From contig OZ316899.1 of the NCBI GenBank assembly GCA_973895155.1, positions 4,653,241 to 4,717,240 on the forward strand: 64,000 nt of DNA, in the 5' to 3' direction. Positions within the stretch are counted from its first letter, which is position 1; each line of letters opens with the position of its first letter. The notes below the pieces were generated by a model. That model saw nothing but the letters and a program-made list of their open reading frames with translations, did not search any database and was not told where the DNA came from. A program made the translations under genes and the position numbers. Shown in pieces: positions 1 to 59,764 of the stretch. This DNA is from Marsupella aquatica. Taxonomy: Eukaryota > Plantae > Marchantiophyta.

Positions 1-205
1 CCCTGTACCAAGTGCTAGCGCCAAGTCTGGGAAAAAATGTATGTTACACATCCCTATTTTGACTTCATCTTTGGGTAGCGCCCGACGCTATTATGTGTCC
101 TGCATTTAATATGTTTTATCTTGTATCAATGTTGGTGTTTGGTCAGCACCTGGCGCTATTACTATTTTTGTGTTAAATAACATTCTATTTTTGACGGATC
201 TGTAG

Positions 206-2035
206 GTGGGAGAAAATTTGATGGTGCCACAAACGACACAAAAATAGATGCCACTTCAAAAGTCTTTGAGGCCAATACTGGTGCCAATCCAGACCCTACC
301 ACTCCAGTTGAGAAGGGGAAAGCTATAGTTCTTATCGACGCCACAAGCACAAAGAAGAAGAAGAAGAAAAGGGCCATCGATGCTTAGGAATCATCTCGAG
401 ATAATGCTTGTGGGGCTGGTCTCCAACGAGATGTGGGGAATTTCAAGAGCAAAGTGGGAAGGCACTGTATGATTGAATCCAGCTTGGCAGAATTTATAGA
501 TAGTGCGATAGTGCTTTTAGCAAGGAGGAGAAGCCAGATTGGGTCGCAGACGCTGAGAAGTGGGATAAGGATTTGATTAAGTCGGGGTGTAGAGATAAAG
601 GAATCATTAGAGGTGGGAAGGAACAATTTTTGGGGGTCAATGCGGGTTTCATCTATCTTCCAACTAGGTTGAAACCCACCATTGTTGACCGTCGGGTCCC
701 ATAATGGAATGTAATAGATCACACAACAGCCAAATCATTTTTCCAAGCTATGGATCCTTTCCTTTTGGATGATGGCATGCTAGCTATCTTATATTCGGAT
801 GACCACGATCAGATTTCCCAAGTCATTGCTACATGTCAGCAGTCCAAGAAGTTCATGTGCATTAATATGCACAATGTTTTCATGCCGGTCCCAATGTATA
901 GATCCAAGACAGACGTCTAGGTAAATGTTTTCTCTAAGTCTTACTTTATTAGCGCCCAACGCTATTTTTACTTTTGGAGTTCTTCTCTGTTGACTAAGAG
1001 ATTTTTTCAATCCAATTGGTTTGCCGACTTGTGTAGGTCTTCACTCTTATACTGGATATATTTTGTCAAGTTTCCTTCAAGGGAAAGGTCCCAAAGGATC
1101 CAAGATTCAAGCTATTATCAAGCGCTGAAGATCCTTCAATCTCAAACCTCATTGGGCTCCAATCTTTGAAGGCAGATCATTGTCCTAAACTGCACTTTAC
1201 TGGGAACACCCAATTGCCGGTTGGTTTTATGCAAATTGTCATTGAACTTTTTACAATATCGAGGGATATTGTTATGGATTGGACCGTCGGTTCTAGTAGT
1301 ACATTCATTGTTGGGGATTACTCTGGCCGTTTTGTCATTGGATTGGAAAATCATCGGGAGTTTGTTGAGATTGCTTCAAGGATTTTTTTGGACCTCATTT
1401 CTCCCAAACCTTTGGAGACACAACCTCCCCCTCCTCAAATAAGTGGATGGAAAAAGAAAGATAGACTTTGATCTATCCTCAACTTTGACTCAGATGAGGA
1501 GGAAGGTACGCCTAAAGATGACGATCCTGAGGATGTCAATAACGATGGGAAAGATTGAGGAAACCCAACATGAAGGGTCAACGGAGGATAGCAAAGAGTC
1601 TTTTGAGTAATTTTTGTCTCTCATAAGCTCCTTTATCCTTTCAATTGTTGGTGAACCTTTAATTCCACCAGTTCTATCTGCCAAGTACTTACTTCCTCTT
1701 CATCTTCCGTTTCTCTTTTGAGTAGGTCAGAATGGAACCAAAGAAAATGATTTCAACTCCGAAGGAAAGTAGCTTAAAATGTAATCGTCACTCCCTAGAA
1801 GCCCTTTGTGTTGCCATCATACACTAAGAATGTCGCAAGGAAGGCTGAGAAATTTAGGACGCTTTGTTGGGAAACAAAAGGCCTTAGGCTTCTTAGGGGA
1901 GTAGACAAGAAGTTCATGAGGAACCCTTATGTAGATGATGTTTCTAGAAGCAAGTATATTGATGACAAGGCTGAATTGACCGATAGATCTCATAGCTCCA
2001 AAAATGATAGCTCGGGATCTGACACTCAAGAGTAG
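206..2035 (+). pseudogene. 3' exons of ParB-MTase-like cargo gene, copy 1 (N4/N6 DNA methyltransferase-like fold), truncated by window start
   Basis: Exons ~206-920, from 1037, and a last exon from ~1726 are colinear with 49160-50992, with the same intron positions (GT 921..AG 1036). Translation QLPVGFMQIVIELFTISRDIVMDWTVGSSSTFIVGDYSGRFVIGLENHREFVEIASRI matches the C-terminal motif X-I-II pattern of beta-class N6_N4 MTases. Several stops and frameshifts. Confidence 0.75.
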
Positions 2036-2560
2036 TAATCTTATCACCTATAAGGTCAAAGTGCCTCTTGACTATACGCTTATGACCTTGGTTTTGGTTA
2101 GCGCCTGACGCTATTGAATTTTAGTAAATACAAGCGCTTGGCGCGATTGAGACCATTGTACAGATATGATTGGTGGGTTTAACATTTGAGTGACCAGGAT
2201 TGAATCTGAGGGACATATGTCACATCCATTTAATGGTTTTGTCAAACCTGATAATGGGGTTGTGCGTAAAGTCTTTGGTGTGGATTCCTCTCTGTGTTTC
2301 ACTAGCGTACGACGCTCCCCAAGAAAGATACCCTAGGTCCCGAAAAAACACATTGGAAGTTTCTGTTTGGATTTTGTCGTTTATACCTAACGGTCCTTTG
2401 CCCGTCAGTCAAAAATTGGTAGCAAAGTCAGGACCAATAACGGGAAATCCAAGTGCCTTATACATATATTGTTGTCTCAAGGATACCAAACATTTTCAGT
2501 TCCATACATTGGTCGAAGCTCTCAAAGTCCAGTGATCTCATATTTCTCCTTTTCAGTTCA

Positions 2561-2983
2561 ATGGAAGGCCATCTTCAAAGTTCCAATGTAAGAAGTGACC
2601 CGGATGTGCATCATCTCGGTATTGTGAGAGATATGAGAGTGGAGATTGGCACAAATAGGGTTATTCAAGGAGACCCCATTGTTCCCGTTTTGACTCACTT
2701 GACTTCTTTTGAGACAAGGATTGAATCTATTGAGACAGAATCCACTAAGAGTGTCAATTGCCTCCATCTTCCACCGGATGAAGGTATCTATCCCGGGGAG
2801 AGGAACATACCTTGGCAGCGTGATGTTCCATTGCCACCGTTTGTAGAGAGGTTTGCTGTTCATCGGCCCAAACCCATGGAGGTGCCACCACCACTCCATT
2901 GTCAACTTCATGAGATGTTCAGGTGCGTTGACTTTCAAGATATGAATCTCCCTGAAGTCAGTTTTTGGAGATCAGTGCATTGA
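2561..2983 (+). CDS. Hypothetical protein, possible additional cargo gene of DNA-transposon copy 1
   Basis: ATG at 2561 follows a pyrimidine-rich acceptor-like stretch; 140 codons of protein-like composition; bracketed by palindrome copies. No recognisable domain. Confidence 0.35.
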   Translation: MEGHLQSSNVRSDPDVHHLGIVRDMRVEIGTNRVIQGDPIVPVLTHLTSFETRIESIETESTKSVNCLHLPPDEGIYPGERNIPWQRDVPLPPFVERFAVHRPKPMEVPPPLHCQLHEMFRCVDFQDMNLPEVSFWRSVH

Positions 2984-3824
2984 ATGTCCACGAGAGCATA
3001 TGTTAACTTTTGATTAGATGGTTTCTGCGAGGATCCAGATCGGTAGGACGTTGGGATTGACAATGACTGTCACTCTTTGAGCTAGGAAATGGTACAAGGA
3101 ATCACCAAACAGGAGTATTAGCGCCTGGCGCTAGTTAGAATTTTAGGGTTAGGAAGGAATGCCCCTTGTTAGAACTCTATTTAGGACACTTCCCTATCCC
3201 ATCTTTCGGGAGTAGAGGCGCATGGATGTAAAATCTGCCTCATCTAAGTGTATTTTCTGAGATGTTTTGTACATGTATCTCAAACTTTTGAGTTTCCTTC
3301 TTTTCTTTTCTAAAGATTGTACATCAATGAAAATGTCTGGTTTCTTTTTCTTCAATTTCCCATTTGCAGTTCAGACTCAGATACCTTGGGGTATAACCAC
3401 CGTGACAGCAAATAGTAAATAGATTTGCTGTTACGAGCAAAAATTTACTCATACGAGTAATTCAATTACTCATAGCAAAAAATTTGTTTACTCATACGAG
3501 AAACTATTTACTTGTATGAGTTTTATAGGTTATTCAAAGTTGACAAAAAGGGCTCCATTTTAAAAAACAACAACCATATAAGCGCTCTCTGAATGCTAAC
3601 ATAATGGGGCCCACCATTCAATGATAAATAACGGGCCATATAGAGGTCATTATAAGAAGACGCGCTTTATTTAACAGGCAATATATTTGCTATCTGTTGC
3701 AAATTTTGGCTAGCGCCAGGCGCTAGCAACAGACAACACATATTTTTGGATAAGAAACCGGTACATCTTCTGCCCGTTAGAAAAGACAAATGCCACTTAA
3801 AGCTATTGAACGACACCAAATTGA

Positions 3825-6800
3825 CTACATGTCCGTTCCATTTTGTCGATCAAGCAGGTAATGGACTTCACCCAATGTCAGAACTGGTTGACTAGATAGT
3901 GTCAAATCATGAAGACTCAACTTCAACACAGTCCTGAATACCCAATATAGATGTTTGCAAGGCATGTAAGGTTTCCTATAAATGTGCCTCCGATAGAAAT
4001 CCTCACACGAACAGCAAGGGAAACAAAAAATCTGCACCCAATAAGAGGCAGCAGTCCTCTCATATTCATGTGTTCTGATACAATACTGCTTCCCCCACTC
4101 GTGACATCTCTCTCGCATACGAGTCTCATTACTTCTGTTTCGGGATGCTTCAATCTTCTTGTAATGTGTTTGAGTTAGATTCACTCTCTGCAAGCACTTC
4201 CTTCCATTCCTGGAGCCACATCTGAAAATTGGGTCCGCTAAATTGATCCTCTCTTGGAACAAATTCACATCGATGCGCAACTCAAACGGGGATGGCTCCT
4301 GACCTTCCCTTACCTCTCCTGTACCAATTAGACCTTGTTCTCTCAAGAATTGGATCTCGCCCTCCTGGAGATTGGTCCTTCTTGCAATGGGAAGAACGGG
4401 TGGTATATTGGGAATGTTTGAAACATCTCTTCTTGGCCAACTTATGTGACATTTGTTGTTTGGGAAAAACCATATCTGGTCCGGATGAGGTTCTCCTCTA
4501 AAAAGTCTACATCCTCTTACAGATATTGCGACAACTCCTTCTGGATTTGGAAACCCAACCTTCTTTACTCGATTTTGACATTCATTGCGGCTTCCTCTCC
4601 AACCGAGGGTCCCATTACAAGCTGGACCAGCACCACATTTTGCAGTTTGTTGGAGCTGCCAGAGACCTGGAGCTATGTCAGTTTCCATCGGGAGAAGAGA
4701 TTCCTTAGGCGCGGCCTCAGCTTCATGTCTGCCGGGAGGAATAGAAGATCTTGTCGTTCGATGTGAGGGTGTCTCAAGGACGACGACCTCCTCAAAATCT
4801 TCACTCTTAGTTTGAGACAAATTAACAACACCACTTCCACCAGCAGAAGGTGTGGAAGACATCTTCTCAAAGTCTGTGGAATGGAGGTTTCTCCTCTTCA
4901 AACCCCTTATATTTGGTGAAATCACAAGGATAGTATCATGCTTGTGAGAGTCTTGTGCCAAGACATTCCCACTTGCATTACCTTTTTGTTTCACCGATCG
5001 AGTGATGACGTCTCCATTCAATGGAACAATTCTTTCCAAATCAAATTCAGCTGCGTTGGAAAGAAGGAGATTGGTCGCTTCTTCAAATAGACATGAAGAC
5101 CCTGTCATGTCCGCAGATCTGAAAGCCAGCTCAAAGATAGTGGGTCTAGTTCCCCGATGTACTCCTCGACCGTATGCAGTATAAGTTGCAATCTGACATA
5201 CGGCTTGGTTTTGGTCAGTTTTGCATCCCTCCATGAGGCCAACCCGCTTCTTCATTTGCCACGCCTTCATGCTTGCATGGACCAATTCCGAACTAGTACA
5301 ATTCTGAATCATACCTGCCTCCTCAGCACTCTTGCTCTGTCATCGAAAACAAATAAATATATTTAGCAACTACAGTAATTTGCGACAAGTGGAGTTTGTA
5401 TTTATGCTATATGGACTCTAACTATAAGTAGCGCCCGGGGCTATCAAATCTCTTGCATCAATGCCATGTTCGTAGTTGCAAAAGTCTGCTTGTTCACACT
5501 AGCGCGTGGCGCTACTATACTGTAACAAGGCATTGGACTCCGAGTACTCATTTTCCATAATAGCGTCGGGCGCTATTACAAAACATTGGTAAAGGACTAT
5601 CATGAATATAAGAAAAGACTTACCAGTCTTATGAAGTTTCCCCACTGTCTCCAACGGACGACCCACCATGAGAGCCATCCTTGCAACATTCGAAGCTTCC
5701 CCTGATGGCAATTTCCAGCTTGCCACCAATCGTCGATCTCTCTTGACATATGATATGCGTCCAAAAATGTTTTTGCGTTACAAAGACTGTCCCACATCTT
5801 CTTGTGTTCTTCAAGTTTTCCTTCTGGAACACCTTCGCGTGAATGCCAACAAAATGACTGATAAAAATGAAACGCATCTGATCGCTCTCGGTCAGGATTA
5901 GGTACCCCATTGAAGAAAACATTTCGCATCGCATTCCAACCAGCCTAGGCATTGTCCACCATGAATCCTTGAATTTGAATGTTCTCCAAGCCATTTTCAC
6001 TCGCAACTTCTATCATCAATCGCCACGCTCTCTCTAAGGATTTGGTGTCTTCAACCTTTAACTCACAAGTGAAAATTGTACAAAGTGCCCGATAGTGATG
6101 ATCATATACATGAACACTAAAAGTTAGCCAGTTTGATGTAATTCCATGCATGACGTCGAAACTCACCATGACCCCTCTAATGAACCACCACGCTGCATTT
6201 TCCGGAGAAGGTTGATCCCAGATCCTTTGCCTTTCACAGTCATCTTGAAGATGTGAGCACTTTCGTCTTGACATCCTTGGCCTGGAAGCAAATACCTATG
6301 AAGAAAGGGACGTCTCACACACTTTTGCATCCACACCAAATATTCAAGCTCATCTTTACCTTTCTGGTCTTGCCTCACACTTCACAGAACAGAAGCAAAC
6401 TTTTGTGGGGTAGCAACAACCATGAGGAACTCCCATATCTCCTTCTCCTCTTCCAAAGACATTTCCTCCACAGATTCCTCACAGAGGACATTGGTTAGAG
6501 AGTCTGTAGCCGCATTTTTTATCCCATCGGGCGTAGCTCGTGGATTAGCTTGGAACTGCTTTGCAAGGTGAGTCTTAGCAACCTTTTCAACCTCTCTCGA
6601 CCACACCCGATGATTGGGATGGTTGTGAAATCCCATGTGCACAGCCAGCCGGGACATATACGCCAAATGTGTTGAATCCACTTTGGCCGAAGGATACATA
6701 TAGAACATCATGGCCGGACACAATCTCGTACACATCGAAGGTTCAAAGCAGTGGTGACAGACAATACCACCTTGCGGGATGAGTTCTCCAACTTGAAAGG

Positions 6801-7643
6801 TTCCTGAGAGTTTTGGTGATCTTGCCCAGACTTGGTTGTTCCTAGTCTTTTTGTCTCTCTAGAATTGGCAGGAATTGTTCCAACATTCAAGAGAACCGGT
6901 ACACTGAACCTTTCCAAAATCCCACATCTTCTTCGATAAAACATTCAAAGATGTTTTGACAATGTGCGTCCAGTAATAGCAATCCTTCCCGCGGTCCATG
7001 TCCTTTAGTCGTTCCCCTTTCAAATTCACGCAATCGACTGGAGGCAACTCAAACACAACATTCCCATTGTATGTCATCGGGAGGCTAGGAACTATCTGAT
7101 GCGTGAAATCCTTCTCCCTAATGAAACAAGATAACTCGCTATGCCCCTTTGATTTTAGGATAGTATCCATCGCACTTTGCCGATATACAATTGGAACATC
7201 TTGAACCTCCATCTTCACAACCAAGGGATCCACTGGGATCCTTTTTGGGACATCAAAGGAAAGGGCAGAATTTTCCCCTCGTCTTCCAAAGTGTCAGAGA
7301 GATTGACAACATCAACACCACCAGGAACAGGACATGGATCTTCCGATGCTTCAGAATCTTCCAAAACAAAGACCTCGTATACTTTATCCGGATACATCGT
7401 CCAAAACCTGAGTCCATCAACGACATCGTAGAAGATGGTATTTGCCTTTGAATCCTTAGGGAGGAGGGACACAGAGAGAATACACTCTTTTGAAACATCA
7501 AATCTTAACCCCAAATATTCATCCGAAACTCTCCTTGACTGAGATTCAGGGGATACGATAACTGTGACAACATCCCGCGTGTCCTTGCGTCTAACTACAA
7601 TCGATCGTCCCATTTCAGCGGAAGAGAATAATCGATGTCTCAC
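3825..7643 (-). pseudogene. MULE/Mutator-like DDE transposase with N-terminal Cys/His (GCM/WRKY-like) region and C-terminal SWIM finger, disrupted
   Basis: Fragments give CWNNSC..CHHC..C..HMGFHNHP; VSFDVMH (D1); GFMVDNA (D2); DAFHF (CxxH position); NCTSSELVHASMK (E); SWIM CSCEDF..PCKHLYWV. One intron at ~5337-5623. Several in-frame stops and a frameshift. Confidence 0.82.
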
Positions 7644-9462
7644 TTTGCCAATCGGTTTAAGGCTTGTTTGATGTACGAGGTTAATAACGACAGTATAAAT
7701 GAACGTTGAATAATGACAAAGAAAGATACGTTAAGCGTTTGGACGATGTAAATCAATTGAGTTTTGTCGTTATTCAACGGCTGTATTGAACCAACTGATT
7801 GGTCAGTAGTTTAATAGCGTCGGGCGCTACTTTTGTGAACGGAGAACAACTTCACAATGGAAGCATGACTCTGGACCAAATATAGTACCGCGTGGGGAGG
7901 AGGAGAGGGAAAACTCAGATTGTAATAATAGCGCTCGGCGCTATCATCAAAGCTCGTACGTTATAACTCTAACAATAGACAAGAAATCCGTGACGCGGTC
8001 CAAATACGCAGTGTGCATTGAAGTTTTCACAATCGAGAGATCTCAAAAATCTACCAACGCATCTCGTACGTCTATTGCACGATTGGAAACCATTACATCT
8101 AAGACATCCATCTGGGGTCCGAACGTTCTCTCCTCTATCCCCAAAACCTGGCCGGTGAGTCTGCCTCCCATCATTTGGAGTTCTTTGTTCTCAAAACTTT
8201 TATTGCGCTCCTGCCTCCGGTTTCGTCCAAGAAACTTCTGTTCAGTCTCAATCTTTTAGAGTCGTTTGTTTAGGTTTCCATGGCTCCACCACAAGCAAAG
8301 GGGAAGGCGAAGGTTACATTTCAAAGCGACAGCAATAGAGAGGGTGCTGTGGAGAAGTCTCTCACAAAGCCTCCAGCTCATTTGACCGTCCCAATCTTGG
8401 CAAAGGGGAAAGTGATCGCTAAGACACGGGGAACTGTATCCGCACCAGATGGTGCTCCTCAGGCTAAAGTAGAAGTTCAACCCTTGGTGCATAAATCTTG
8501 GGTGTCCAAGGCGGAGTTTTCTTCTTTGCACCAGTCACCTGGGCATGGCACAAGTTGTCACGTCGTCAACCTAGGCCTTAACCCGGGCTTTGGCTTAGAC
8601 AGGCACATCCTTTGTGAATATGAGGGTTCGGGCAGGGAGGGACGCACAAAATGCTCCTAATTCACGTAAATTAGCGCTAAGTGCACTTATTGTTATGTAC
8701 AGACACCTCCTAGGTATAGTTTGTGTTCTGCCGCCTGAACGTACCTTAGTCAACACGGGGTCAACCCCGGCTCACGGACTTCTAAGCCTTTGTGTTACCG
8801 CCTTCGATCCGGATCCGTTAGTACAAGAGCTCAACTCGGGCTCGCAACCCCGTACCCATATCCTGAACCCCGTGCACGGTTGGCATAACGTGTTTGGCCC
8901 GTCATTGATACTTGCACATGAGACTCATACATGCATACATACATAACATAAATCTTGATTTACACGAAGGAATTAAAGAGAAAGGATTTCATTCATTTAT
9001 GATCATACACTTTACGATTGGTTGACCCGACACCTCGTGAACAACCGGGCCCAAGGCCGAGGAGTATACACTACAATGGAGCCCGACTCTGCACTCGCCC
9101 AATGTGACGGGTACCCCGTCACGGGAAGTCACACATAACTGGTTGCAAAGGCCGATACCTTGTTAATAGTCAATGTAAATAAGCCATTTTTTAATTTTTA
9201 GTTAATTCCGTCATTATAGGTTGATGATGCCCCAGGTGACTTTATATTCTTTCTCTCATAATAGTTCTAAGATTTGCGGCGACCTAAGTGGGCAAATATT
9301 TTGGGACCTTGAAACTAGCCAGGACCAGCCCCATAGGACTTACCGTTTTGCTTCAAGAGCTATTGTTGAGACCCCCATTGCAAAGTCAGGAGAGGGGGGG
9401 TTTTTTTTAAATAAATCCCTCCTCAGGAGGGCGAGTCCCATTAGTGGCCGTCCGAGAGAAAG

Positions 9463-9836
9463 AGGGGCTGCCTCGCGAGCCCATAGGGCTGCGTGCCCGG
9501 GCGATTAATGGGGCTCCGCGAGCTGAAGGGGCTGCCTCGCGAGCCCATAGGGCTGCGTGCCCGGGCAATTAATGAGGCTCCGCGAGCTGAAGGAGCGCAA
9601 GCGAGCGGGGGGGGGGGAGTTAAAGGGCCTCCCGCGAGCTGGGAGGATCACGCGAGCGGGGGGGAGTTAAAGGGCCTCCCGCGAGCTGGGAGGATCACGC
9701 GAGCGGGGGGGAGTTAAAGGGCCTCCCGCGAGCTGGGAGGATCACGCGAGCGGGGGGGAGTTAAAGGGCCTCCCGCGAGCTGGGAGGATCACGCGAGCGG
9801 GGGGGAGTTGAAGGGCCTCCCGCGAGCCGGGAGGAA
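9463..9836 (+). repeat. GC-rich tandem repeats in LTR of A: 64-bp unit x2 then 47-bp unit x5 (also at ~20206-20580)
   Basis: 47-bp unit CGCGAGCGGGGGGGAGTTAAAGGGCCTCCCGCGAGCTGGGAGGATCA with starts at 9651, 9698, 9745 and 9792; both unit types share CGCGAGC. Confidence 0.95.
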
Positions 9837-10258
9837 TGGCCGCGCGCCCTGCATAGGGCCGCGCGCAGGAGGACGCAAGGGTAAGGCCCGAGAAATGGGC
9901 CGGGGCGCATGGCGAAGGCGCCAGGAGTTTTTTCGGTTCTATTTTTTTTTCCTTCCTTTTTCTTTCCCTCTTCCTTTTGCACGACCCTCTCATTGCCGAA
10001 AGCAAAAACGGGGTTCTTCTCTCTCTTGCCGGAAGCTCTCTCCAGATTCTAATTATTTTTGAAGCTCTCTCTTTCATGGTGGATTAGTGGGGCTTGCTGG
10101 CGTCATTCTTCCAGGCATTAGTGGCGGCCGCACGGAGTAGTGACGGGAAATTGAGAGAATTTAAGTGATCGGGCTACGGGGGCTGTTTCGGGCCAGGGAA
10201 TTGACATTGCCACGGGTGACGGGATTGGTGATTGAGAAATTGATTTCGGGATGCATGG

Positions 10259-13246: not shown

Positions 13247-13264
13247 TGGCGCCGCTGCCGGGGA
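13247..13264 (+). promoter_or_regulatory. Primer-binding site of A, tRNA-Asp type
   Basis: TGGCGCCGCTGCCGGGGA is one mismatch from the Athila-type Asp PBS TGGCGCCGTTGCCGGGGA; it lies 20 nt from the LTR end. Confidence 0.8.
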
Positions 13265-13481
13265 ATCCTTCTTCTTGTTTGACGACACGAAGGAGGGGAG
13301 CTACGTCTATTGGGAGTTCAAACCTATCAACCACAACGCAACTTGCGACGGTTGATACGTGAGAAGTTTGTTGGTTACTTTGTTATTGTACGTCAACCAC
13401 AACGCATCGTGCGACGGTTGATGTTTACAAATATTGCTTTCTGAGACATTGGTGTAAGTTTGGAATGCAGGTCTCAATGGG

Positions 13482-38758: not shown

Positions 38759-38776
38759 CCCCTCCATCTAGCGCCA
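38759..38776 (-). promoter_or_regulatory. Primer-binding site of C, tRNA-Asn type
   Basis: Minus strand TGGCGCTAGATGGAGGGG, 4 nt from the LTR; near-complement of the plant tRNA-Asn 3' end (TGGCGCTAGAAGGAGGG), as recalled. Confidence 0.72.
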
Positions 38777-44219: not shown

Positions 44220-44339
44220 GGTTGCCCCTAATTGTTTATATTTTCCTTGTTTTGTCCCTATACTAAGGTGTTTCTAGGGTGCCTTCCTGCTTTACCCACT
44301 TAACTGGCCGAGTGATTCCTGTCTAGGCATCACATCTTG

Positions 44340-45356: not shown

Positions 45357-45561
45357 TACACGCTCGCAACCCGGGCGTGCGAATGGCGACTTGCCGCCAG
45401 CCCAAACACGAACGCCCCTTATTGACTAATGATTTCCTACTCATAATGGCTACCTAAATACTATTGTTATGCTAATAATTACGGCCTAAGATACCCCTAA
45501 CGCGCGTGCTAAGCGTTGTTAGGCCAAATCACTCATTACCCACCGTACCGGCGGCATCACA
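45357..45561 (-). repeat. 205-bp remnant of 5' LTR of B
   Basis: Matches 27191-27395 with about 14 substitutions; joined directly to RNaseH sequence by a deletion. Confidence 0.9.
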
Positions 45562-49800: not shown

Positions 49801-50992
49801 ACAGAAATTAAAGTGTATCTCAACACACAATGTTGTGATGGGCACTCCAATGTACAGGCCTCGCTCGGATATGCAGGTATGTATAGTAGCGCCTGGCGCT
49901 ATTCCAGAGTTTCTGTTTTGTGTCCTCCTTTGGAGATTGACGGTGACGATAGCGCCAGGCGCTAGTGTGGCATTTCCTCTTCATGCAAGGTTTCCCTATT
50001 CTCAACGTAGTATCTGATGTTTATTCTGAACAAAACGTTATTCGATGTGCAGATTTTTATGCTCACTCTCAATGTTTTTGGGCGTGTTTCGTCCAAAGGT
50101 AGGGTCCCGAAGGATCCCAAATTTTGGCCTCTTTCACATATAGAGGATCCTTTGATAACCAATCTCATTGGTTTTCCCGTGCCAAAAAATGATCCTCTGT
50201 CAGAGCTTGCGTTTGCTGGGAATTCAAGGTTGCCTGTGGGTTTCATGTAGTCAATTTTAGAATTAATTACCCTCCTTGGGGATATTGTCATGGACTAGAC
50301 TGTTGGGGCCGGAAGTACATTTGTTGCTGGAGATCATTGTGGGAGGTTTGTAGTCGGGATTGAAAATTGTAAAGAGTTCTTGAGAACAAAGAGGCCTCCA
50401 CGTCCACGCCTCCGCACCGGCAGGTGGGGAGTAAGAAGCAGGACAGACTCCATGCTATTCTTAATTTTAATTCTGACAAGGACAATGATGGAGGCGATGG
50501 TACTCAATAGTCCAAAGATGATGGTGCCTCCAAGAAAGTGGTGAACCTCGGGTCTTCTGAATCTGAGGATAGTGAAGAGTCTTCTAAGTAATGATCTCCA
50601 GCTTCCCTGCCTTTTTTTTCTTTTTAAGGGTGACATTAGTGTCTCCAAAATTCCACCATTTTCCCGGATCCGACTAAAGATATTGGATTCAACTTTCCAG
50701 GTCCGAGTGGAATCTTTGGAAGCGCTTTCAATTACGGAGGAAAGTTGCTAGGAATGCAATAGAAATCCCGGAGAAGCCGTTTGTCTTGCCTTCTTATGCA
50801 AAAAAGGCGGCTCGAAAAGCAGATTCTGTGAGAATGCTGACTTGGGAAAGCAAAGGCCTGAGGCTCAAAAGGGGCTTGGATAGGAAGTTTATCAAGAACC
50901 GCTATGTCAATGACATTGTCCCGAGCAAGTATGTAGACGATGAAGTTGAGTCTACTGATAGTCCCAAAGTAGTGAAGAAGAATCAGAACTAG
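46856..50992 (+). pseudogene. Multi-exon ParB/Srx-like + N4/N6 DNA-methyltransferase-like fusion gene, copy 2
   Basis: Exon 1: IPLCQL..LKESF..GY..FCVFDGNHRLYSW..AAMHAVN (ParB/Srx GxxR motif). Introns 47572-47700 (phase verified), ~49051-49159 and 49877-50052. MTase part: DVGFIYLPTG..KWN..FLADDGLLAILH, then RLPVGFM*SILELITLLGDIVMD*TVGAGSTFVAGDHCGRFVVGIENCKEF. Multiple stops and frameshifts. Confidence 0.8.
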
Positions 50993-51208
50993 ATACGACT
51001 GATTCAGAATCTGATGGCTAGCGAGACTTTAAAACAATAGTTTTTGGATAGAGATATTGGCTATTTTACAAAATAGCGCTTGGCGCTATTGTGAACACAT
51101 GTAATATTGATGGGTGTTTATAAAGTGAGACGGACTGTCCAAATTGTTTTTTTACTATACTTTCCTCTGTGAAGAGGACAATCTTAACTTGGGATGTATT
51201 ATAATTTG

Positions 51209-51358
51209 TGTTATAAGTTAAAGTTAACCCTAGATAAACAGGTTAAGGAGTAGTTACATAACTACCTCCATATAACCACACATCTGTACTAAACACTTAC
51301 ATTATTATGAATGTTGGAGGTTGGAGTAAGTTCTGGCTATGGTGTCCTCAATCTAACA
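51209..51358 (+). repeat. 5' LTR of D (150 bp)
   Basis: TGTTATAAG...CTAACA, repeat of 58860-59006. Confidence 0.93.
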
Positions 51359-51716
51359 CGTTATCAGCACGTCTCTTCGAGCAATTTTTTATTAAACGGC
51401 CATACAAGCATGAGAGAGGAGATTGCCCCCAACCTATCAACAATTTTTCCCTTTTTCAATCAATAGGATCCTAACCCAATACAAAAGTGCCAGAAATTGA
51501 ATTTCTAAATCCTCCAAAGATCGCATACTGCTCGGTGCTCACTACCTCCCAAATTTAGGAAGAATTGCGAGGCGGGAACCATTTTCCTATAAGGACACGG
51601 CTTGGATATCTACAAATTTCAAATCAACAGTATCCCACACACAATTTCCTTTACAAGGATCACACTCCAAAGAAGGAAACCCTTACGGGCTGACAAGAGA
51701 AGCGGTTACACAACAA

Positions 51717-54700
51717 TGACGCTAGAAAGCTCAGCTTTCGAGAATTGGCAATTGATGGATCAAATTATTTATCTTGGTCTCTCGATATAGAGGCGCACCT
51801 CGCAGCGAAAGACCTCCTAGACACAATAATTACATATCAAGGACCTACGCTACGAGAAGAAGCAAAGGCCCTCGTTTTCATAAGGCACCATCTAGCAGAT
51901 GCTCTGAAAACTCAATACTTAAATGAGTACAATCCGAGAATATTATGGGACAAATTGAAACTTTGATTCGATCACATGCGGCTCATCTCATTACCAGCAG
52001 CAAGACACGGCTGGATCAACCTCAAGGTGCAAGACCACAAGACCATCGCAGAGTACAATAACAAATTATTTTGCATAGCCTCACAACTCGCGATCTGTGG
52101 GAGCCCGGTCGATGATGTAGAGCAAATTGAGAAGACCCTATCAACATTCCATGCAACTAACTTAGTATTATCTGCCCAATACATAAATATGGCATTCACG
52201 AGATACTCCCAATTAATTGCACACATGTTATTAGCAGAGAAGCATCAACTACTACTCCTGGAGAATTTGAAGGCAAGGCCCCCAGGTACCCTCCCACCTA
52301 TAACCAAACCTGAATCACAATACAATAGTAGAAATCAAAGGGGAAGAGGATTCAGGGGGAGGAGCGAAAACTATGCAGGCCGAGGTCGAAGCCAATTTGC
52401 AAGAGGAAGGGGCTCAGGATGCATGAACAACCCCAAAAATAATCAAACAAAGTGGCAGAGTTGAAGCAGTGAACATGGCAGAGGGCGGAGTCGACCCAAC
52501 AATAACAATACATCAGATAAGAGGAACAACCTTCCCAAATGTTTCAGATGCGGCACACTAGGACATACAAGAAATGAATGTAGGGCACCCTTGCATTTAG
52601 TTAAACTTTATTAGAACAGCATAAACTACCCTATAAGAGAACCCCAAGGAATTTTTTTGGAATTACCACAAGACCTCACCCAATACATTACTAAACCAGC
52701 CTCACCCGAAATACACGCAATTATTTATGGAACAGAGAGGCCAAACTTAGCAGACCCAACAACCTGCATAATAGACAGCGGCACCTCACATACCATCTTA
52801 AAAGATAGAAAATACTTCACTAGCATCATACCATCATCCAGAACTATTACTACGATCTCCGGACAAAAACAGATTGAACATGGCCATTGTAAGGCTGTAG
52901 TAATATTCCCAAGAAGGACAGTGATCCACATAGAATCTGCGATATACGCCCCCACAGCCACAAGAAACCTGATTAGTTTTCAGGACATCAGGGCAAATGA
53001 CTTACATATCCACACAAATATACACAAGAACAGAGAAGTACTATACATTCTCAAGAAGACCAAAAAGGGACTACAGATCCGAGAAATACTCTCAACAGAA
53101 CCCCCAGGACTATATATGACCCAAATACAGTCACATTATGCCGAAGATAAACAAGAGAGTATTGCCATTACATGGCATAATTGGTTGGGACATCCCGGCA
53201 CAAACATGTACCATAAAATCTGTAAAGATTCAGTGGGCATACCACAAGCAGCTAAAATACCTCCCAAACGAGAACCCTGCAGAGCATGCTCGCAGGGTAA
53301 GCTAATAACCCGCCCAGCAATTACCAAATCGGTGTATACTATCCCCAAATTCCTGGAGCAACTCAATGCAGATGTCTGTGGCCCCATTGACCCACCTAGT
53401 GGACCATTCAAGTTCTTCTTGGTTCTGATCGACTCATCGTCCAAGTGGTCCCAAGTCTCCCTACTATCAACGAGAAACCTAGTATTCTCAAGAATCCTAG
53501 TGAACATACTTAAGTTAAGAGCTCAGTTCCCTGAGAACCCAATACGCATCATATGAGTCGATGGAGCAGGAGAATTTACTTCCAAGACATTTAATGACTT
53601 GTGCATTACTGCTGGAATAGAAGCCCAATACTCTGCCCCATATGTACACTTCCAAAATGGGATAGCCGAGTCAGTGATTAAAAGATTACAGATGATTGCA
53701 CGCCCATTATTAATGCAAACTCCCAGCTACAGCCTAGGGACATGCCATACTACACGTAGGGTCCCTACTACAGTATAGACCTTCATCTTTCAACTCATTG
53801 TCCCCACACCACCTAGCATACGGCCTACCCCGAACCTCACCCACCTGAAAACATTTGAATGCCAGGTGCTAGTACCAATCTTGGGCCCTAAACGCACAAA
53901 ATTGGGCCCCCAGAGGCAAGTAGGAATCGGGTAGGAATCTATGTCGGTTTTGATTCTCCATCCATTATAAGATTCCTAGAACCTACTACCGGGGATGTTT
54001 ATAAAGCCAAATTTCAGGACTGTCACTTCTTCAAGAACACATACCCAAAACTGACAACCGGAAAACCAGAAGACACGGTTGTAGCACCTAAGTTACTATG
54101 GAAAACTAAGGACATACTCCTAAATGACCCGAGAATGAGACAAGCAGATGAAGAAGTCAGACGAGTCTTACATTTAAACCAAATATTGAACACATTACCA
54201 GATGCGTTCAATGATGCCACTGTTGTAACCCGCTCTCACATAGAGGCCGCAAACGTACCTACACATATTAAACCCATGCAAATTGAAGCAGCTGAGGTAC
54301 CACCTAAAGCTAAGTGAGGCCGACCCCTAGGATCTAGAGATACTTGCCCTAGACAGAAACAGAATACAACACCCACGACTACACCACCTATAGACAACAT
54401 CAGCAAAGAACCTAATACGAATCCACCACAGGACAACGAGGAAATATCAATACAATATATGCATACAGGACAAGTGTGGCAGAGAGCACAGACTACAGTA
54501 AATGCACAATTTGCTTTCCTCATTGCACAGGAAATTACTAACGATACTCCTAATCCACAGACGGTCCAGGAAGCTCAAAACAGAGAAGATTGGCCACTCT
54601 GGCAGGAGGCAATAAACTCAGAGCTTGACTCACTAATTAAGCAACATGTATTTGGCCCAATCCTACCAGCTCCATCAGATAGGAGCCTAACTGGATATAA

Positions 54701-56439
54701 ATTTACCTTTGTGCAAAAAAGGAACGCGAAAGGAGAAGTGATATGAGACAAAGCTAGACTCGTGGCAAAAGGATACACTCAGATTTATGGTCGAGATTAC
54801 GACCTGACGTACTCACCTGTTATGGATGCAATCACATACCGCTATATGATAGCCTTTGCTCTATTCCATAAGCTAATAATGCACCTGATGGACGTTGTAA
54901 CGGCATATCTGTACGGCATTATGGACACGGAAATATATATGCAAGCACCCCCTGAATTAATTACCAGAGTCAAGTTCCATATTCAGGGGGAGAAAGGCAC
55001 CATACTACATCCGGATCTGCAATCAGGCATTAAACAAATCACTGATAAGCCAAAAAATGGACCTACAGTCCAAAACACCCATGGGATAAAATATCAAACT
55101 AACCAGCCTACTGCTGAGTTAGGAGTGAAGGATGCTCCTTTCAAGCCCTTGCAATGGTACCAACGCAACCAGGGAATCCCATTCCCAAACGAAGGTGGAC
55201 TTCTTCCACCTCAACATGCCAAAACGCAAAGAAAGCAGAAAACAACAAAGCTAGCATATGCAGTACAAGTGATGAGATCCATAAATGGCCTGAAACAAAG
55301 CGGCCGCATCTGGTACAAATGCTTTCGCGATGAAATGTTGGCCTTACAATTTACAAATGCAGAAATAGCACCCTGTCTATTTCTTAAACATGTTGGCATA
55401 GAATTTGTGATACTAGCAATTTATGTCGATGATATCAATATCTTTGGAACTAAGCAGCTAACAACACAGACGATCGCAACACTTAAGAGAGTTTTTGAAA
55501 TGAAAGACATTAGAGTCCCGAGTTACTGCCTCGGCATTCAGTTTAATCATCTAGAGGAAGGTATCCTTATCAACCAATCTACATATACACAGAAAATTCT
55601 CAAACAGTTTAATATGCACAACTCGTACCCGGTTAGCACTCCAACGGACTTACGTTCACTTGACCCAGCACGAGACATGTTTAGAAAGCGCTAGGAACAC
55701 AAACAAGTGTTGGGACCCAAGAAACCATACCTTTCAGCAATTTGGGCCCTCCTCTACTTACCAAACCAAACGCGACCTGACATCAGTTTTGCAGTCAACC
55801 TCCTTGCAAGACATGGATCACAACCAACAATAAGGCATTGGAACAGAGTGAAAAGAGTTTTCCGCTACTTACAAGGGACAGCCGATATGGGATTATACTT
55901 CCCCAAGAATGCGACCCCAATCTTAATCGGATTTGCAGATGCCGGATACTTGTCTGACCCAGACAATGCGAAGTCCCAGACCGGATATGTCTTCCTACAA
56001 GGGGCAACAACAATTTCATGGAAGAGCACGAAACAATCATTGACAGCTACATCATCGAACCATTTGGAAATCATCGCACTCTATGAAGCTACAAGAGAAT
56101 GCGTGTGGCTCAGAAGCTTAATCGACCACATCAACCAGAGCACAGGCAGACCACCATTGACAGAACCTACCATTCTTTACAAAGACAATCGACCATGCGT
56201 GGACCAGATTGCGCAAGGCTTCATCAAAGGGGACCGGATAAAACATATTGCCCCAAAACTATTCTACGCACACGAACAACATGGAGATAAGATACAAGTT
56301 CAATGGATATCAACGAAAGAAACACAGGGCCGACCTCTTTACGAAACCCTTACCTCCCGCCCTCCATAAAGCTCATACATGTGGCATTGGAATGCGACAG
56401 TTAAAAGATATATTACGCCAAGACGCAGCACAGAACTAA
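51717..56439 (+). pseudogene. gag-pol: gag-pol of D (gag, PR, IN, RT, RNaseH), disrupted
   Basis: IDGSNYLSWSLDIEAHL; CFRCGTLGH; IIDSGTSHTI; WHNWLGHPG..CRAC; ADVCGP; GLKQSGR, IYVDDI; GFADAGY, SWKSTKQ, SSNHLE. Confidence 0.93.
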
Positions 56440-57298
56440 GACAGAAGATGAAAGCACTTACCTTTTTTTCTGCCAAAATGAGCTTGGACGAGTTGCACCC
56501 ACAGGGACTGAGTTTAGTGACACCATAGTTTTTCCTAGCCAGGTGGATCAGTGCATTATGGTTCCGATGCAGACCATGAGAGGATGGTCCATTGTCATAC
56601 CAATTTTCCCTCGGCGAAGGAAGGGCTTCATGGCATCAGTCCTTGCAGACGATGCGGACTGACACTATCCTTCACACCCTCCATTTATATGTATTGGCTA
56701 TGCCCACCTTCCACATATATATTGACATATGTTTCGACGTTTGAGATCTGGCAAACTGGAGGGAGAGTTGTGCAAAGTTTCTTCTTTCCTCACTTTATAG
56801 CTAAGAACACATTAAAAAGCATTAAACCTCGGCCTTCGAACAACCTTCAATGGGTCCTAGCACGTAAACCCTTATCACGTAGGCCAATTGACACTTCGAA
56901 CTTATTAACGTCAACCTCAACGTCATTAGACAATCAAAGGTCGCTTATACCCATAATGAAGACATTAATCTATAGTTATGTCGTAGATACTTTGTACAAA
57001 CGACGTATACATAGTACGTCCTTGGTTTACCTCGTAGTAGACGACGTAGATTGTGTTACCATGTCTTAAACGACGTAAACGTTTATTTAACCATTCTTCT
57101 GATGACGTTCAAAGTTTCAATCGACGTTACTCACAAAACACATTACAAATATAAATTGCCTGGGAGGGACTTTTTATTCATGCGCTCAGAAACATACAAC
57201 GTGCACATAAGGCATGAGTCTGACTCCAGTCTAAACTGATTCCAATCCTAGGCAAATGATGCTCCTCCGTCTCCAGCTGACCTTGGCACTAGTGTAGC

Positions 57299-57859
57299 TT
57301 AAGGGGTCCCTTCACCAGACCAGTAGTACTCCTCATCTGCCTTCCTCTTTTTGTACGAATCACGCCTATTGCTGGCGTTCCATTTCTTGCGGACCACTGC
57401 TTCACCAACCTTCAGCCTTTCAGCCTCAATCTCAGCTGCACAGCTTTCCTTGTAGTCATACATCACAATATCAAGTTCAGTCGGTGACAACTGACATTTA
57501 GCCAACTTTGGTGGACAAGCCTCACCATCATCATCCTTGGGCGTATTGTCCAGCATCAAATCATCCCCTGGATGCAGCAAAAACTCTTCTGGGTCCAACT
57601 CCTTATTGCCCAGAATGGAGTCCTGTACCCAACAAATCGAGATGAAATGCACGGACTCTGCAAAGTGCTCGATCAATCCAGGATAGTCACTGAAGTGCTC
57701 TGTGACTTGTTTCCAGGTATTGGCAAGCAAGTATTCCGTCTTTGAGTTACAAAACTTGTCTATCACACCTCCACGACAAAAAAAGCCACGAACAGTCTTG
57801 TCTTCTTCACCTAGCGGAAGAAAACAACAGTGGACATCCTTGAATATCTTACATACCAT
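57299..57859 (-). CDS. Antisense accessory ORF (186 aa) in 3' region of copia D
   Basis: Uninterrupted and protein-like, with Cys residues, an acidic middle and a basic YKKRK tail; lies between pol end and PPT. Confidence 0.6.
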   Translation of the reverse strand: MVCKIFKDVHCCFLPLGEEDKTVRGFFCRGGVIDKFCNSKTEYLLANTWKQVTEHFSDYPGLIEHFAESVHFISICWVQDSILGNKELDPEEFLLHPGDDLMLDNTPKDDDGEACPPKLAKCQLSPTELDIVMYDYKESCAAEIEAERLKVGEAVVRKKWNASNRRDSYKKRKADEEYYWSGEGTP

Positions 57860-58859
57860 AGTTGAAGACTTTCAATCTCACTCTGCAAATTCTGTGCACT
57901 ATCGTACCCGTAGGACATCTGAAATCACGAATGACCTGTGCAGTGAGGTCCCAGTAGCCTTGCCCCAAAAACTCCCGCAAAAAACCTTACGCATGCCAAT
58001 TGGATTCCATTAACGTCGTTTCCCACATTGGTCATATACGTCTAACATCGCCCAACATCCATTATACATCGTCATAGCATAGTATCCGTTATAGCCACGT
58101 CTGAAACGACGTACATCTATACATCGACCCAACCCTATTCTGTTACACCGTCTGGGACGACGTCTACATGTTTGCCTCGTTATAAAAGACGTAAATAGCC
58201 CTATTGGGAGATACGTTAAATTAAAGACCCTCTAGACGACGTAAAATGGGAAGGAAAGTCAAATGGGTAAACCCATTTTGGGTTACGACATAGAGGGAGA
58301 TGTACTGGGGAGTAACGTCGTGTCACATGACACGAAAGGAAGTCACGACGTAGTGAAATGTAGTTGTGACCATCACAACCTAACCAAGAAGCCATGCCGA
58401 TGACCACCGTCATACTTGACAAGAAACACAATCGATACAAAACAACATGCGCGACCTTCATAGAACACATTGACTTTTTCTTTAAGAAAAATCCTTCGAC
58501 ATGGAGAGCGACTTCATCGGAAACACTACGACCTCGATCCCGCTCAGTTGAAGCTTACACCCCCGGCTTACTTACCATTTATATTACTTAAACTACGTAA
58601 CTTAGACAGTTAACAAAAGGCTACTCCTCTGGATTTACATTACACATATACATTTTAGACACGTAAAACTCTGATTAAACTTTTATTTTCTTTAGTTCGT
58701 CCCACATCATGTAATGGCTGTGGCACTCTTTCCCTTATAGTCAGAAGAAGGGTTTTGATGAGACCAAACCAACAAAAGATGGGACCTACTACGGGTTAAA
58801 CTTCCTTTTAGTGTGGTTGATTTTATTTTTTTGCTATACTTAAATCAACCAAGGGGGAG

Positions 58860-59006
58860 TGTCATAAGTTAAAGTTAACCCTAGATAAACAGGTTGAGTA
58901 GTTACATAACTACCTCCATATAACCACACATCTGTACTAAACACTTACATTATTATGAATGTTGGAGGTTGGAGTAACTTCTGGCTATGGTGTCCTCAAT
59001 CTAACA
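58860..59006 (+). repeat. 3' LTR of D (147 bp)
   Basis: Repeat of the 5' LTR with a 3-bp indel and 2 substitutions. Confidence 0.93.
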
Positions 59007-59764
59007 ATTCGGTCATATTAGAATGTGACTTCCCCCCTTCCCAATTTTTCATCAATTGGCATCTGATGGTCTTTAATTGATCTCTATTTTTTAGGTCTGT
59101 TATTGACGTCTGAATGAGGTTTCGGGTATTCTAGACTGTTTCAAGACTGTGGCGCTGGGCGCTAGTATTACGATGTGTTTCAAAATAACGGATTTTAGAG
59201 GTTTCAATTTCATTTTGAGAGAGATGTACGATTAGGGAAGATTTTTTTGGTGCAGACATTTGCTGTTATGAGCTTTACTATTTGCTGTTTGTTGTTTCCT
59301 GTTTGTTGTCACCGTCAAAAGCCTCATACCTTGGTTAAGTTCTGGTTTTGTACTTTGATAATGAGTTTCAAGTGTTGGAGTTTGGAAATTGATTGGTATG
59401 TTTGGTTTTTATTTGGATCTTATCAAAACCTCAGCCTGAACATTACTCTTATGTTCTCATGATTTGCTTCACAAAAGCAGCGCCCGACGCTAGTATTCGG
59501 CATGTTTGGGAGATAGATGTTTGATTATGTAGGGTTTGAATGCCCGGTGCTAGTATTGGGCATGATGTATGTGTGATTGCTTTGGCTGTAAATGTCCGGC
59601 GCTAGTATTTGGCATTGCAGAAGTATGAGTATTTTGAGAATGGATTTTCCAAATTTTACCACAATACCAGGAGAAATGTGCACCTTTAATAGGAAATTTT
59701 GCTGTTACCAGTTCCTATTATAGTTTCCTATTTGCTGTTTACTGTCTTTTGTAAATACCTCCTT

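Follow-up and report, generated by a model that had tools for sequence, protein, structure and literature searches.

In a 64,000-nucleotide stretch of the Marsupella aquatica genome (assembly GCA_973895155.1, contig OZ316899.1, positions 4,653,241 to 4,717,240; hereafter the window) we found a 15-bp palindrome, TAGCGCCNGGCGCTA, repeated through the non-coding DNA of a putative two-gene DNA transposon. One gene encodes a transposase-like protein; the other, present in two decayed copies, encodes an accessory protein with a ParB/Srx-fold domain and a methyltransferase-like domain. Copies of the palindrome stand at equivalent places in the two paralogs, and related elements carry palindromes of their own. 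From this pattern in the sequence we predict, with considerable confidence, that the palindromes are functional, element-specific protein-binding sites. The ParB/Srx-methylase-like protein is a candidate for their reader, and we put its chances at about even.

Exact matches to TAGCGCCNGGCGCTA occur four times in the window, against 0.00 expected, and matches with at most two mismatches occur 22 times, against 0.09 expected; none of 100 dinucleotide-preserving shuffles gave more than two. The first-pass annotation had counted about 25 copies, a figure that is reached when a copy with three mismatches at 2132 and two half-sites near 59540 and 59592 are added, with the qualification that only four are perfect. 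All 22 copies fall in three stretches of element backbone (1-8000, 46100-51100 and 59100-59500), which are AT-richer (GC 0.40-0.45) than the intervening DNA (GC 0.50-0.55). The motif-bearing backbone amounts to 13.9 kb. The nested long terminal repeat (LTR) retroelements, about 46 kb, contain a single match, a three-mismatch string at 37182 that is at chance level, and the earlier description of the copies as non-coding, restricted to the backbone and absent from the nested elements was borne out. When the palindrome was masked, no second enriched k-mer stood out in the 13.9 kb of backbone.

The 45 nt on each side of the copies show no mutual similarity, so the motif is a free-standing 15-mer. 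Adjacent copies are often 58-71 bp apart, or about double that distance. Among the mismatches to the consensus in the 22 copies, 19 of 25 are C>T or G>A; the inner CCnGG positions account for 17 and the outer TAGCG...CGCTA positions for eight. A purine stands 5' of the motif in 21 of the 22 copies and T or C stands 3' in 16, and the best-conserved form is R-TAGCG-N5-CGCTA-Y rather than the whole 15-mer. The inner CpG is retained in 20-22 of the 22 window copies and the outer CpG has decayed in several lineages; the retention of the inner CpG fits constraint or protection at the core.

Eight copies lie within canonical GT-AG introns, and GT-AG borders were confirmed at every intron position at which copies had been reported in the two genes (Table 1). 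Both accessory-gene copies, paralogs A and B, contain in-frame stops; our searches used single stop-free pieces of the window genes, and statements about full-length proteins rest on annotated proteins of the liverwort Riccia sorocarpa. A and B are 55-65% identical at the protein level in the blocks aligned by tblastx, and their DNA aligns over 324 nt only, at 67%. Three positions located from these blocks match between the two, which bears out the equivalence that the first reading of the sequence had claimed for the introns: the copy at 950 in A and those at 49887 and 49950 in B sit in the same intron, the copies at 76 and 144 and the one at 49101 lie ahead of the same exon, and the copies at 2099 and 51074 each lie 115 nt past the last conserved block. 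The non-coding DNA around these copies has diverged beyond alignment. The paralogs lie on the same strand, flank the transposase-like gene and share one palindrome; the window is either one element with two paralogs or two adjacent elements, copy A running off the window.

Paralog B is collinear with the Riccia proteins P0158 and P0029. An exon end after the ParB/Srx domain is common to its relatives, most phmmer matches stopping at query residue 256, and Riccia genes have an intron at the same point as the one at 47573-47699. Two introns, the one that follows the ParB domain and the one that precedes the motif-I exon, are common to the Riccia and window lineages, so the site-bearing introns are old. 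For both genes the closest named relatives are from a liverwort and from ferns, and the intron borders (GTAAGT...YAG) are plant-like, which makes a seed-free land plant the likely source.

We compared the window with related loci from Riccia sorocarpa and from environmental contigs; eight of them have the gene pair of the window, each with a variant palindrome. Three Riccia loci (L004, L006 and L007) are collinear with it, each having a transposase-like gene, a spacer and the accessory gene on the opposite strand. The window carries 15 copies of TAGCGCCnGGCGCTA at up to one mismatch; L009 has the same palindrome in seven copies, often within GC...GC, upstream of ORF1 and between ORF1 and ORF2 (open reading frames 1 and 2 of the transposase-like gene). 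The other loci carry TAGCGCCGGCGCTA (L010, two copies in the DNA after the ParB exon), TAGCGAGnCTCGCTA (L005, three copies, one in the gap after the ParB exon), TAGCGGnnCCGCTA (L001, nine copies), CCAGCGnnnCGCTGG (L002, two copies) and CGGCGGAnTCCGCCG (L004, 18 copies at up to one mismatch, in arrays spaced 66-135 bp). L006 has nine copies of CGGCGAGnCTCGCCG upstream and 12 of CAGCGGnnnCCGCTG downstream, and L007 has 11 copies of CGGCGGnnnCCGCCG and 11 of CAGCGGnnnCCGCTG. Given that the L006 and L007 types differ by CpG transitions at the outer position and that hybrid copies exist, we rejected two separate site classes in favour of one, C[GA]GCGG-N3-CCGC[CT]G. A divergent subfamily is represented by L011 (Riccia sorocarpa CM100801.1, 3991-15285), which has an accessory gene and 29 copies of CAGCGAcccTCGCTG at up to two mismatches over 11 kb; no transposase gene could be detected in the 10 kb that flank it on each side.

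The cross-table of motifs by loci is nearly diagonal and each count is far above that of shuffles. Motif and subfamily thus co-vary, a relationship that the first-pass annotation had proposed to look for: related loci carry related but distinct palindromes with almost no cross-occurrence. All variants have GCG at positions 3-5 of each arm and four or five bases between the cores, and in L005, L010 and the window alike the intron that immediately follows the ParB exon contains a site. For a tree of the transposase core, the translated alignment pieces of each locus were joined with stops written as X. It separates a Riccia clade (CGGCG or CAGCG arms) from a clade of the window, L001, L002, L003 and L009, with the split supported at 100/100. 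In the window clade the arms are TAGCG in the window, L001 and L009 and CCAGCG in L002, and L003 has no motif. The site sequence has changed in concert within each lineage. Sites that are element-specific, are kept in otherwise unconstrained DNA and change in concert form the pattern expected for the targets of a symmetric dimer that the element encodes.

Several further features of the related loci were noted. L004 contains, at 8498-9257, 3143-3627 and 15239-15474, tandem arrays of 95-bp units, some with one palindrome each, and a 24-bp array (TAGCCCGGGGTCGGCGCTGGATTA) near its right end. The sites of L011 have an asymmetric centre (CCC or GGG) that gives them an orientation; almost all those upstream read CCC, and those in or just after the gene read GGG. 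The gap between the transposase blocks is only 41-56 bp long and free of palindromes in the environmental relatives L002 (1191-1247) and L003 (1425-1466), 284 bp in the window, and 760 bp and filled with sites in L001; this intron seems to be longer where it holds more sites. The L001 variant TAGCGGnnCCGCTA was also found once in each LTR of a Gypsy element nested in the window (12570 and 23314), probably as one chance sequence duplicated with the LTR.

The accessory protein was characterised through paralog B and its relatives. A phmmer search with the 257-aa exon at 46802-47575 returned 209 relatives among 1.84 billion representatives, those with names being hypothetical proteins of Riccia sorocarpa and of the ferns Adiantum nelumboides and A. 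capillus-veneris. A profile search found at least 75 Riccia sorocarpa proteins, spread over all chromosomes; that assembly treats at least 75 gene models from this transposon family as ordinary hypothetical proteins. The same profile search, aimed at the algal ParB-methylase proteins discussed below, returned Riccia, Adiantum and environmental proteins only, with a sensitivity limited by its dependence on shared words.

The AlphaFold2 (AF2) model of the region encoded at 47099-47572, made from a 32-sequence alignment, had a mean predicted local distance difference test score (pLDDT) of 92.2 and a predicted template-modelling score (pTM) of 0.86. The ten best Foldseek matches in the PDB were all ParB or Noc, led by 7bnr_A (E=0.014, probability 1.00, TM score 0.44-0.46). 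ParB proteins of Myxococcus, Bacillus and Caulobacter ranked first, followed by Noc, KorB (8QA8, 8QA9), sulfiredoxin, SbnI and a serine kinase. The sequence WDGNHR or FDGNHR was present in 96 of 105 motif instances. In the model DGNHR follows strand E103-109 and stands at the start of helix H111-123, the strand-helix junction at which the ParB/Srx fold carries its GxxR motif. We take WDGNHR to be of the DGQHR/Srx kind and not the GERRxRA box of ParB proteins that bind cytidine triphosphate (CTP). By sequence alone the domain was not recognised: there was no Pfam ParB match for window pieces or intact homologues even at E<=10, a ParB-domain profile found nothing among PDB sequences, the modelled exon stops after the N-terminal domain, and the region downstream of that domain had no Pfam or PDB sequence match. 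The 'ParB' of the first-pass annotation is retained as a confidently predicted ParB/Srx fold, from AF2 and Foldseek, but without the GERRxRA CTP box.

Support for the methyltransferase label came from Pfam. All long exon pieces of both genes and the intact homologues were run at E<=0.01 and E<=10, and the C-terminal motif of PF01555 (N6_N4_Mtase) was the only family found. In the window it matches 1166-1471 in paralog A (37.6 bits against a cut-off of 26.7, E=3e-9), over profile positions 163-220 of 221, the C-terminal motif I that binds S-adenosylmethionine (SAM). The same motif I was found in Riccia proteins P0158, P0159 and P0156 at 23.7-26.2 bits; the N-terminal two-thirds of the profile were unmatched in the window and the Riccia proteins alike. 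The full-length Riccia proteins (about 1,100-1,200 aa) consist of a ParB/Srx domain, a long middle, a motif-IV-like strand and motif I, which is the beta-class order. In P0158 (1,207 aa) DGNHR lies at residue 271 and motif I at 1112-1162; this protein at full length found nothing meaningful among PDB sequences. At the site of the catalytic tetrapeptide Riccia proteins have DLPTG, DMPSG or DMPTG, Adiantum proteins DVPFG and the window YLPTG. The label thus holds for the SAM-binding motif I but not for the catalytic tetrapeptide, which is non-canonical, and because of this methylation is uncertain: the motifs found do not argue for DNA methylation by the accessory protein. Some Riccia members (P0158, P0159, P0156 and P0162) are named 'Trimethylguanosine synthase' in UniRef, while Pfam gives them the weak PF01555 motif-I match only. 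Active PF01555-type N4-cytosine methylases that act at CG are known in Marchantia (10.1101/2021.02.12.428880).

The second gene had been called the transposase of a Mutator-like element (MULE), a name that found no Pfam support. The MULE, Transposase_mut, FAR1/WRKY and SWIM models matched neither the window exons nor the intact 690-, 742-, 517-, 474- and 315-aa homologues. The first exon is decayed, with one frameshift near 6170-6180 and in-frame stops, and its part from 7236 to 5618 is 42-58% identical to the intact 690-aa and 742-aa ORFs P0154 and P0155 from environmental contigs. The second exon contains a 495-aa ORF that is 41-42% identical over its whole length to P0001-P0003 and aligns to ORF2 of L001, L002 and L009; its C-terminal CxC...CxH cluster was seen by eye only. 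A homologue search with the 690-aa ORF found itself and one relative only. The AF2 model of the core, from a four-sequence alignment, was poor (pLDDT 48) and showed three strands followed by a helix. The protein has conserved D...D positions and conserved ...FDVMH... and ...FMADNA... blocks. These strands, positions and blocks are compatible with a DDE core and prove nothing.

The termini of the elements were less clear. MULEs have long terminal inverted repeats and target-site duplications of 8-11 bp. Near 1110 and 16021 of L004 stand inverted repeats about 55-64 bp long, where a clear target-site duplication was not seen, and its palindromes are confined between these putative ends. A search for the termini of the window element through inverted matches gave only one 25-nt match that includes a motif copy: the first CCnGGCGCTAGTATTnGGCAT unit with 10 nt of flank (TTCACAAAAG) is the inverse of 7815-7839.

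Taken together, these findings suggest a family of two-gene DNA transposons in seed-free land plants for which the palindrome would serve as a cis-acting 'self' site. Its members would have two divergently transcribed genes, for a transposase-like protein of about 1,200 aa and for an accessory protein of about 1,100-1,200 aa whose N-terminal domain has the ParB/Srx fold and whose C-terminal domain resembles beta-class amino-methyltransferases. They would also have 15-30 copies of one CpG-containing palindrome of 14-17 bp in the shared promoter spacer, the introns of both genes and the 3' flanks. A dimeric protein encoded by the element may read both half-sites, its specificity drifting along with the sites, and the likeliest such reader would be the ParB/Srx-methyltransferase-like protein. 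Sites this dense could let the protein cover the element in full and determine the state of its chromatin or transcription. Once bound, it might shield or mark CpGs against host silencing in the manner of VANC, or might instead autoregulate the divergent promoters as KorB does from its O_B sites.

The L011 locus and the red-algal reports described below, in which arrays lie beside a ParB-like gene and this gene is found with other transposon types, favour the accessory protein only mildly. A number of observations weigh against it, or against so full a reading of the sites. The Foldseek E-values are weak (0.014) and the TM scores are about 0.45; the motif is DGNHR instead of the CTP box; the catalytic motif lacks the aromatic residue of (D/N/S)PP(Y/F/W). 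The ParB/Srx N-domain is a nucleotide-binding or catalytic module and not the DNA-reading part of ParB, and no helix-turn-helix (HTH) or other DNA-binding domain was found in the accessory protein by Pfam or PDB sequence searches. Because both genes always travel with the sites, co-variation cannot tell the two candidate readers apart, and the transposase-like protein has a Cys/His-rich N-terminal region of its own that could read them. Transitions at the outer CpGs (CGGCG > CAGCG > TAGCG, with hybrids seen) make up much of the difference between lineages, and the variants could be CpG decay homogenised by tandem duplication instead of co-evolving specificity. Finally, the copies in this window have become pseudogenes, which leaves nothing active here today.

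The loading and spreading suggested by the first-pass annotation was, in its CTP-dependent form, not supported by the motifs found and is speculation, because WDGNHR stands in place of GERRxRA and no HTH was shown. A broader form of the idea, in which ParB-type loading operates on eukaryotic chromatin and a land-plant transposon encodes a dimer that reads co-evolving palindromes and shields or chemically marks the CpGs of the element, making the subfamilies of one genome private to one another by a parS-like 'barcode', is tentative; we consider it possible and clearly short of an even chance.

The best-surviving alternative is that the palindromes are bound by the transposase, whose Cys/His-rich N-terminal domain would read them to aid synapsis or to mark the element for excision. 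CACTA (through TnpA), Ac and Mutator elements have subterminal transposase-binding repeats in their terminal few hundred bases, usually non-palindromic. They resemble the present case in having many short element-specific motifs bound by an element-encoded protein; here, unlike there, the sites extend over the whole element, through introns and spacers. The alternative would explain the three sites in the window's transposase intron and those upstream and in the intron in L001 and L009, the arrays beside putative termini at the right end of the window and in the 3' flank of L004, and the agreement of arm type with the transposase tree; non-autonomous copies like L011 would have to keep sites for the transposase. 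However, the transposase sites that are known are grouped in the few hundred bases next to the ends and do not occur in every intron and spacer over 10-15 kb, the putative terminal inverted repeats of L004 (about 1110-1164 and 15957-16021) contain no palindrome, and the red-algal arrays adjoin the ParB-like gene, which also occurs with unrelated transposases. We regard a transposase reader as unlikely, if still deserving of serious weight.

It is rather improbable that the sites are cis-regulatory elements which the transposon has accumulated to promote or protect its expression and which a protein of the host reads, for instance a dimeric transcription factor, an insulator protein or a methyl-CpG-related protein. 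Copies do lie in the spacer between divergent genes (7815, 7929 and 46160-46484, and likewise in L004, L006 and L007), and the constant GCG core with its fixed spacing would suit one conserved host reader. The sites are nevertheless absent from 50 kb of other window DNA and from the flanks of the Riccia elements, and subfamilies within the one genome of Riccia sorocarpa differ in their inner bases, which a single host factor would not favour.

An action through nucleic-acid structure (a cruciform, a pre-mRNA hairpin, or a source or target of small RNA) would draw on the perfect palindromes, many of them transcribed within introns. We consider it very improbable: the centre of 0-3 nt leaves a hairpin stem of only about 5 bp, copies are equally common in untranscribed spacers, and what is conserved is fixed positions (TAGCG..CGCTA) rather than pairing. 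Mismatches are not compensated on the other arm, and with the short centre this led us to reject the RNA-hairpin idea. A separate tiny mobile element that left the copies as insertions or footprints, or a short repeat of the whole genome that lies here by chance, would explain their multiplicity and nothing else, and both can be dismissed. With unrelated flanks, the motif belongs to no longer repeat and to no miniature inverted-repeat transposable element, the refutation the first-pass annotation had itself named. Target-site duplications are absent, the paralogs have copies at conserved positions, the younger nested retroelements are free of copies and the variants are lineage-specific.

The reading of the palindromes as self sites of an accessory protein has close counterparts in algae. 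In Ectocarpus, Sola1-1_Ec32 encodes a 1,104-aa protein with ParB-like and DNA-methylase parts opposite its transposase (PMC12477816). In Plavaka elements of the red alga Bostrychia, PAG2 combines PF01555 with SET and PAG3 combines a ParB-like domain (best HHpred match 7BNR) with a 2-oxoglutarate (2OG) oxygenase; inverted-repeat tandem arrays adjoin PAG3 across red-algal Plavaka families, and both genes are also associated with other transposon types (10.1101/2025.02.11.637652). Self-binding and self-modification were proposed for the algal systems without experiments (PMC12477816; 10.1101/2025.02.11.637652). Several features recur in the present family: the accessory protein is about 1,100 aa long, joins a ParB-like N-terminus to a methylase of PF01555 type, is encoded on the other strand from the transposase and has inverted-repeat arrays beside its gene, and the best structural match is again PDB 7BNR. 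The likeness is one of domain architecture and published description. In red algae, by contrast, the ParB-like domain is fused to the 2OG oxygenase and the methylase to SET, in two genes. The present family differs from the algal systems in belonging to land plants (the liverwort Riccia and Adiantum ferns), in sites that also fill introns and differ by lineage, and in its non-canonical catalytic motif. The first-pass annotation had called the combination undescribed, a claim overtaken by the 2025 publications on ParB-like and methylase accessory genes with inverted-repeat arrays in red and brown algae. No land-plant report of such a system turned up in our literature search, and the Riccia genome paper makes no mention of transposons. 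New are the occurrence of such a family in land plants, palindromes of defined sequence that sit in conserved introns and vary by lineage, and the non-canonical catalytic motif.

In Arabidopsis the anti-silencing protein VANC21 binds short motifs that lie in VANDAL21 introns and spacers, motif and protein co-evolving (PMC5735166), and VANDAL/VANC is the only known case of transposon self-recognition and modification according to the preprint of Petroll et al. (10.1101/2025.02.11.637652). As here, the transposon encodes an accessory protein and has short motifs concentrated in its introns, its spacers and the non-coding DNA of its ends; related families differ in both motif and protein, and tandem duplication enlarges the arrays. 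VANC is, however, unrelated in sequence and has no ParB or methylase domain, and its motif YAGTATTAY is asymmetric, AT-rich and in one orientation, whereas ours is a CpG-rich palindrome that implies a symmetric dimer. KorB regulates promoters from O_B operators scattered over plasmid RK2 (PMC11790492). It shares with the present case the ParB/Srx fold and a 13-16 bp palindrome in multiple copies on a mobile element, promoter regions included; that the O_B core TTTAGCGGCTAAA has TAGC...GCTA arms like the window motif is a curiosity and not evidence. KorB and ParB have a GERRxRA CTP pocket and a site-reading HTH, neither of which was found here, and the present protein differs from them in its eukaryotic chromatin context and its fused methylase-like domain.

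Self-recognition and self-modification of DNA are known from few transposons. Riccia sorocarpa, with dozens of annotated and apparently intact copies and clear-cut candidate sites, makes the ParB-methylase idea testable in a land plant, and the private site variants within its one genome offer cognate against non-cognate sites as a built-in control of specificity. If true, the idea would extend the 2025 algal observation to land plants and would point to old, widespread transposon accessory proteins of bacterial descent.

Table 1. Positions in the window of the genes, introns, palindrome copies and nested retroelements.
Feature	Position	Strand	Remarks
Paralog A, 3' half of accessory gene (ParB/Srx-methyltransferase-like)	1-1984	+	cut by window start; pseudogene, in-frame stops
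Paralog A, conserved blocks	202-917, 1037-1501, 1718-1984	+	tblastx against paralog B
Paralog A, GT-AG intron	918-1036	+	between motif-IV and motif-I exons; GTAAAT after block end 917, frame change
Transposase-like gene, second exon	3825-5337	-	open 495-aa ORF 3825-5312
Transposase-like gene, GT-AG intron	5621-5338	-	GTAAGT...GACAG; between ORF1 and ORF2 homology blocks; three motif copies
Transposase-like gene, first exon	5618-7643	-	Cys/His-rich N-terminal part; DDE-like core (...FDVMH..., ...FMVDNA...)
Paralog B, full-length accessory gene (ParB/Srx-methyltransferase-like)	46802-50959	+	decayed pseudogene, in-frame stops
Paralog B, ParB/Srx domain	47099-47572	+	
Paralog B, GT-AG intron	47573-47699	+	directly after ParB/Srx domain; CAG/GTAAGT...ACGTAG/G
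Paralog B, GT-AG intron	49051-49159	+	approximate ends; CAG/GTAAGG...TTTCAG/G
Paralog B, degenerate motif-IV exon	49463-49873	+	
Paralog B, GT-AG intron	49874-50052	+	motif-IV/motif-I exon junction; same position as 918-1036 and Riccia intron
Paralog B, SAM-binding motif-I exon	50053-50382	+	
Paralog B, C-terminal block	50693-50959	+	
Motif copy, 1 mismatch	76-90		non-coding, before exon block starting at 202 (paralog A)
Motif copy, 2 mismatches	144-158		68 bp after copy at 76
Motif copy, 2 mismatches	950-964		intron 918-1036; equivalent to 49887/49950 of paralog B
Motif copy, 1 mismatch	2099-2113		115 nt beyond the final conserved block in paralog A; counterpart of 51074
Degenerate motif copy, 3 mismatches	2132-2146		
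Motif copy, exact	3119-3133		intergenic
Motif copy, exact	3711-3725		about 100 nt beyond 3' end of transposase-like gene
Motif copy, 1 mismatch	5429-5443		transposase-like gene intron
Motif copy, 1 mismatch	5500-5514		transposase-like gene intron
Motif copy, 1 mismatch	5561-5575		transposase-like gene intron
Motif copy, 1 mismatch	7815-7829		spacer between divergent genes; with 10 nt flank, inverted match to 59468-59492
Motif copy, 1 mismatch	7929-7943		spacer between divergent genes
Motif copy, 2 mismatches	46160-46174		upstream of paralog B
Motif copy, 1 mismatch	46296-46310		upstream of paralog B
Motif copy, 1 mismatch	46412-46426		upstream of paralog B
Motif copy, 2 mismatches	46470-46484		upstream of paralog B
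Motif copy, 1 mismatch	47659-47673		paralog B intron 47573-47699
Motif copy, 2 mismatches	49101-49115		paralog B intron, about 49051-49159
Motif copy, exact	49887-49901		paralog B intron 49874-50052
Motif copy, exact	49950-49964		same intron 49874-50052; 63 bp after copy at 49887
Motif copy, 1 mismatch	51074-51088		115 nt past end of paralog B
Motif copy, 2 mismatches	59150-59164		backbone resuming beyond nested Copia element
Motif copy, 2 mismatches	59478-59492		first of three CCnGGCGCTAGTATTnGGCAT units, about 55 bp apart
Half-site units GGTGCTAGTATTGGGCAT and GGCGCTAGTATTTGGCAT	59530-59615		rightmost motif-related sequence
Ty3/Gypsy element	9102-23970		apparently intact, very young; 4.1-kb LTRs 9102-13226 and 19844-23970, 99.86% identical
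Rearranged retroelement block	27187-45561	-	27895-32566 repeated at 38781-44335, 98.7-98.9% identity
Copia element	51208-59006		151-bp LTRs, 96.7% identical; between paralog B and right-hand motif copies

Rfam and tRNA scans of the window were empty. The nested Ty3/Gypsy element has an open 2,132-aa gag-pol ORF (13482-19880). Each of its LTRs contains an open 618-aa ORF (10259-12115 and 21003-22859) with no Pfam match, and 47-bp and 64-bp tandem repeats were found in the LTR at 9463-9835. The long ORFs of the rearranged block (835, 546 and 441 aa) had no Pfam match either. Within this block a 780-bp piece is also present in inverted form (31786-32565 against 41340-40561), and a 210-bp repeat pair at 27187-27395 and 45352-45561 is 93% identical. 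A second, diverged Copia fragment lies at 60017-62629, in the opposite orientation to the first.

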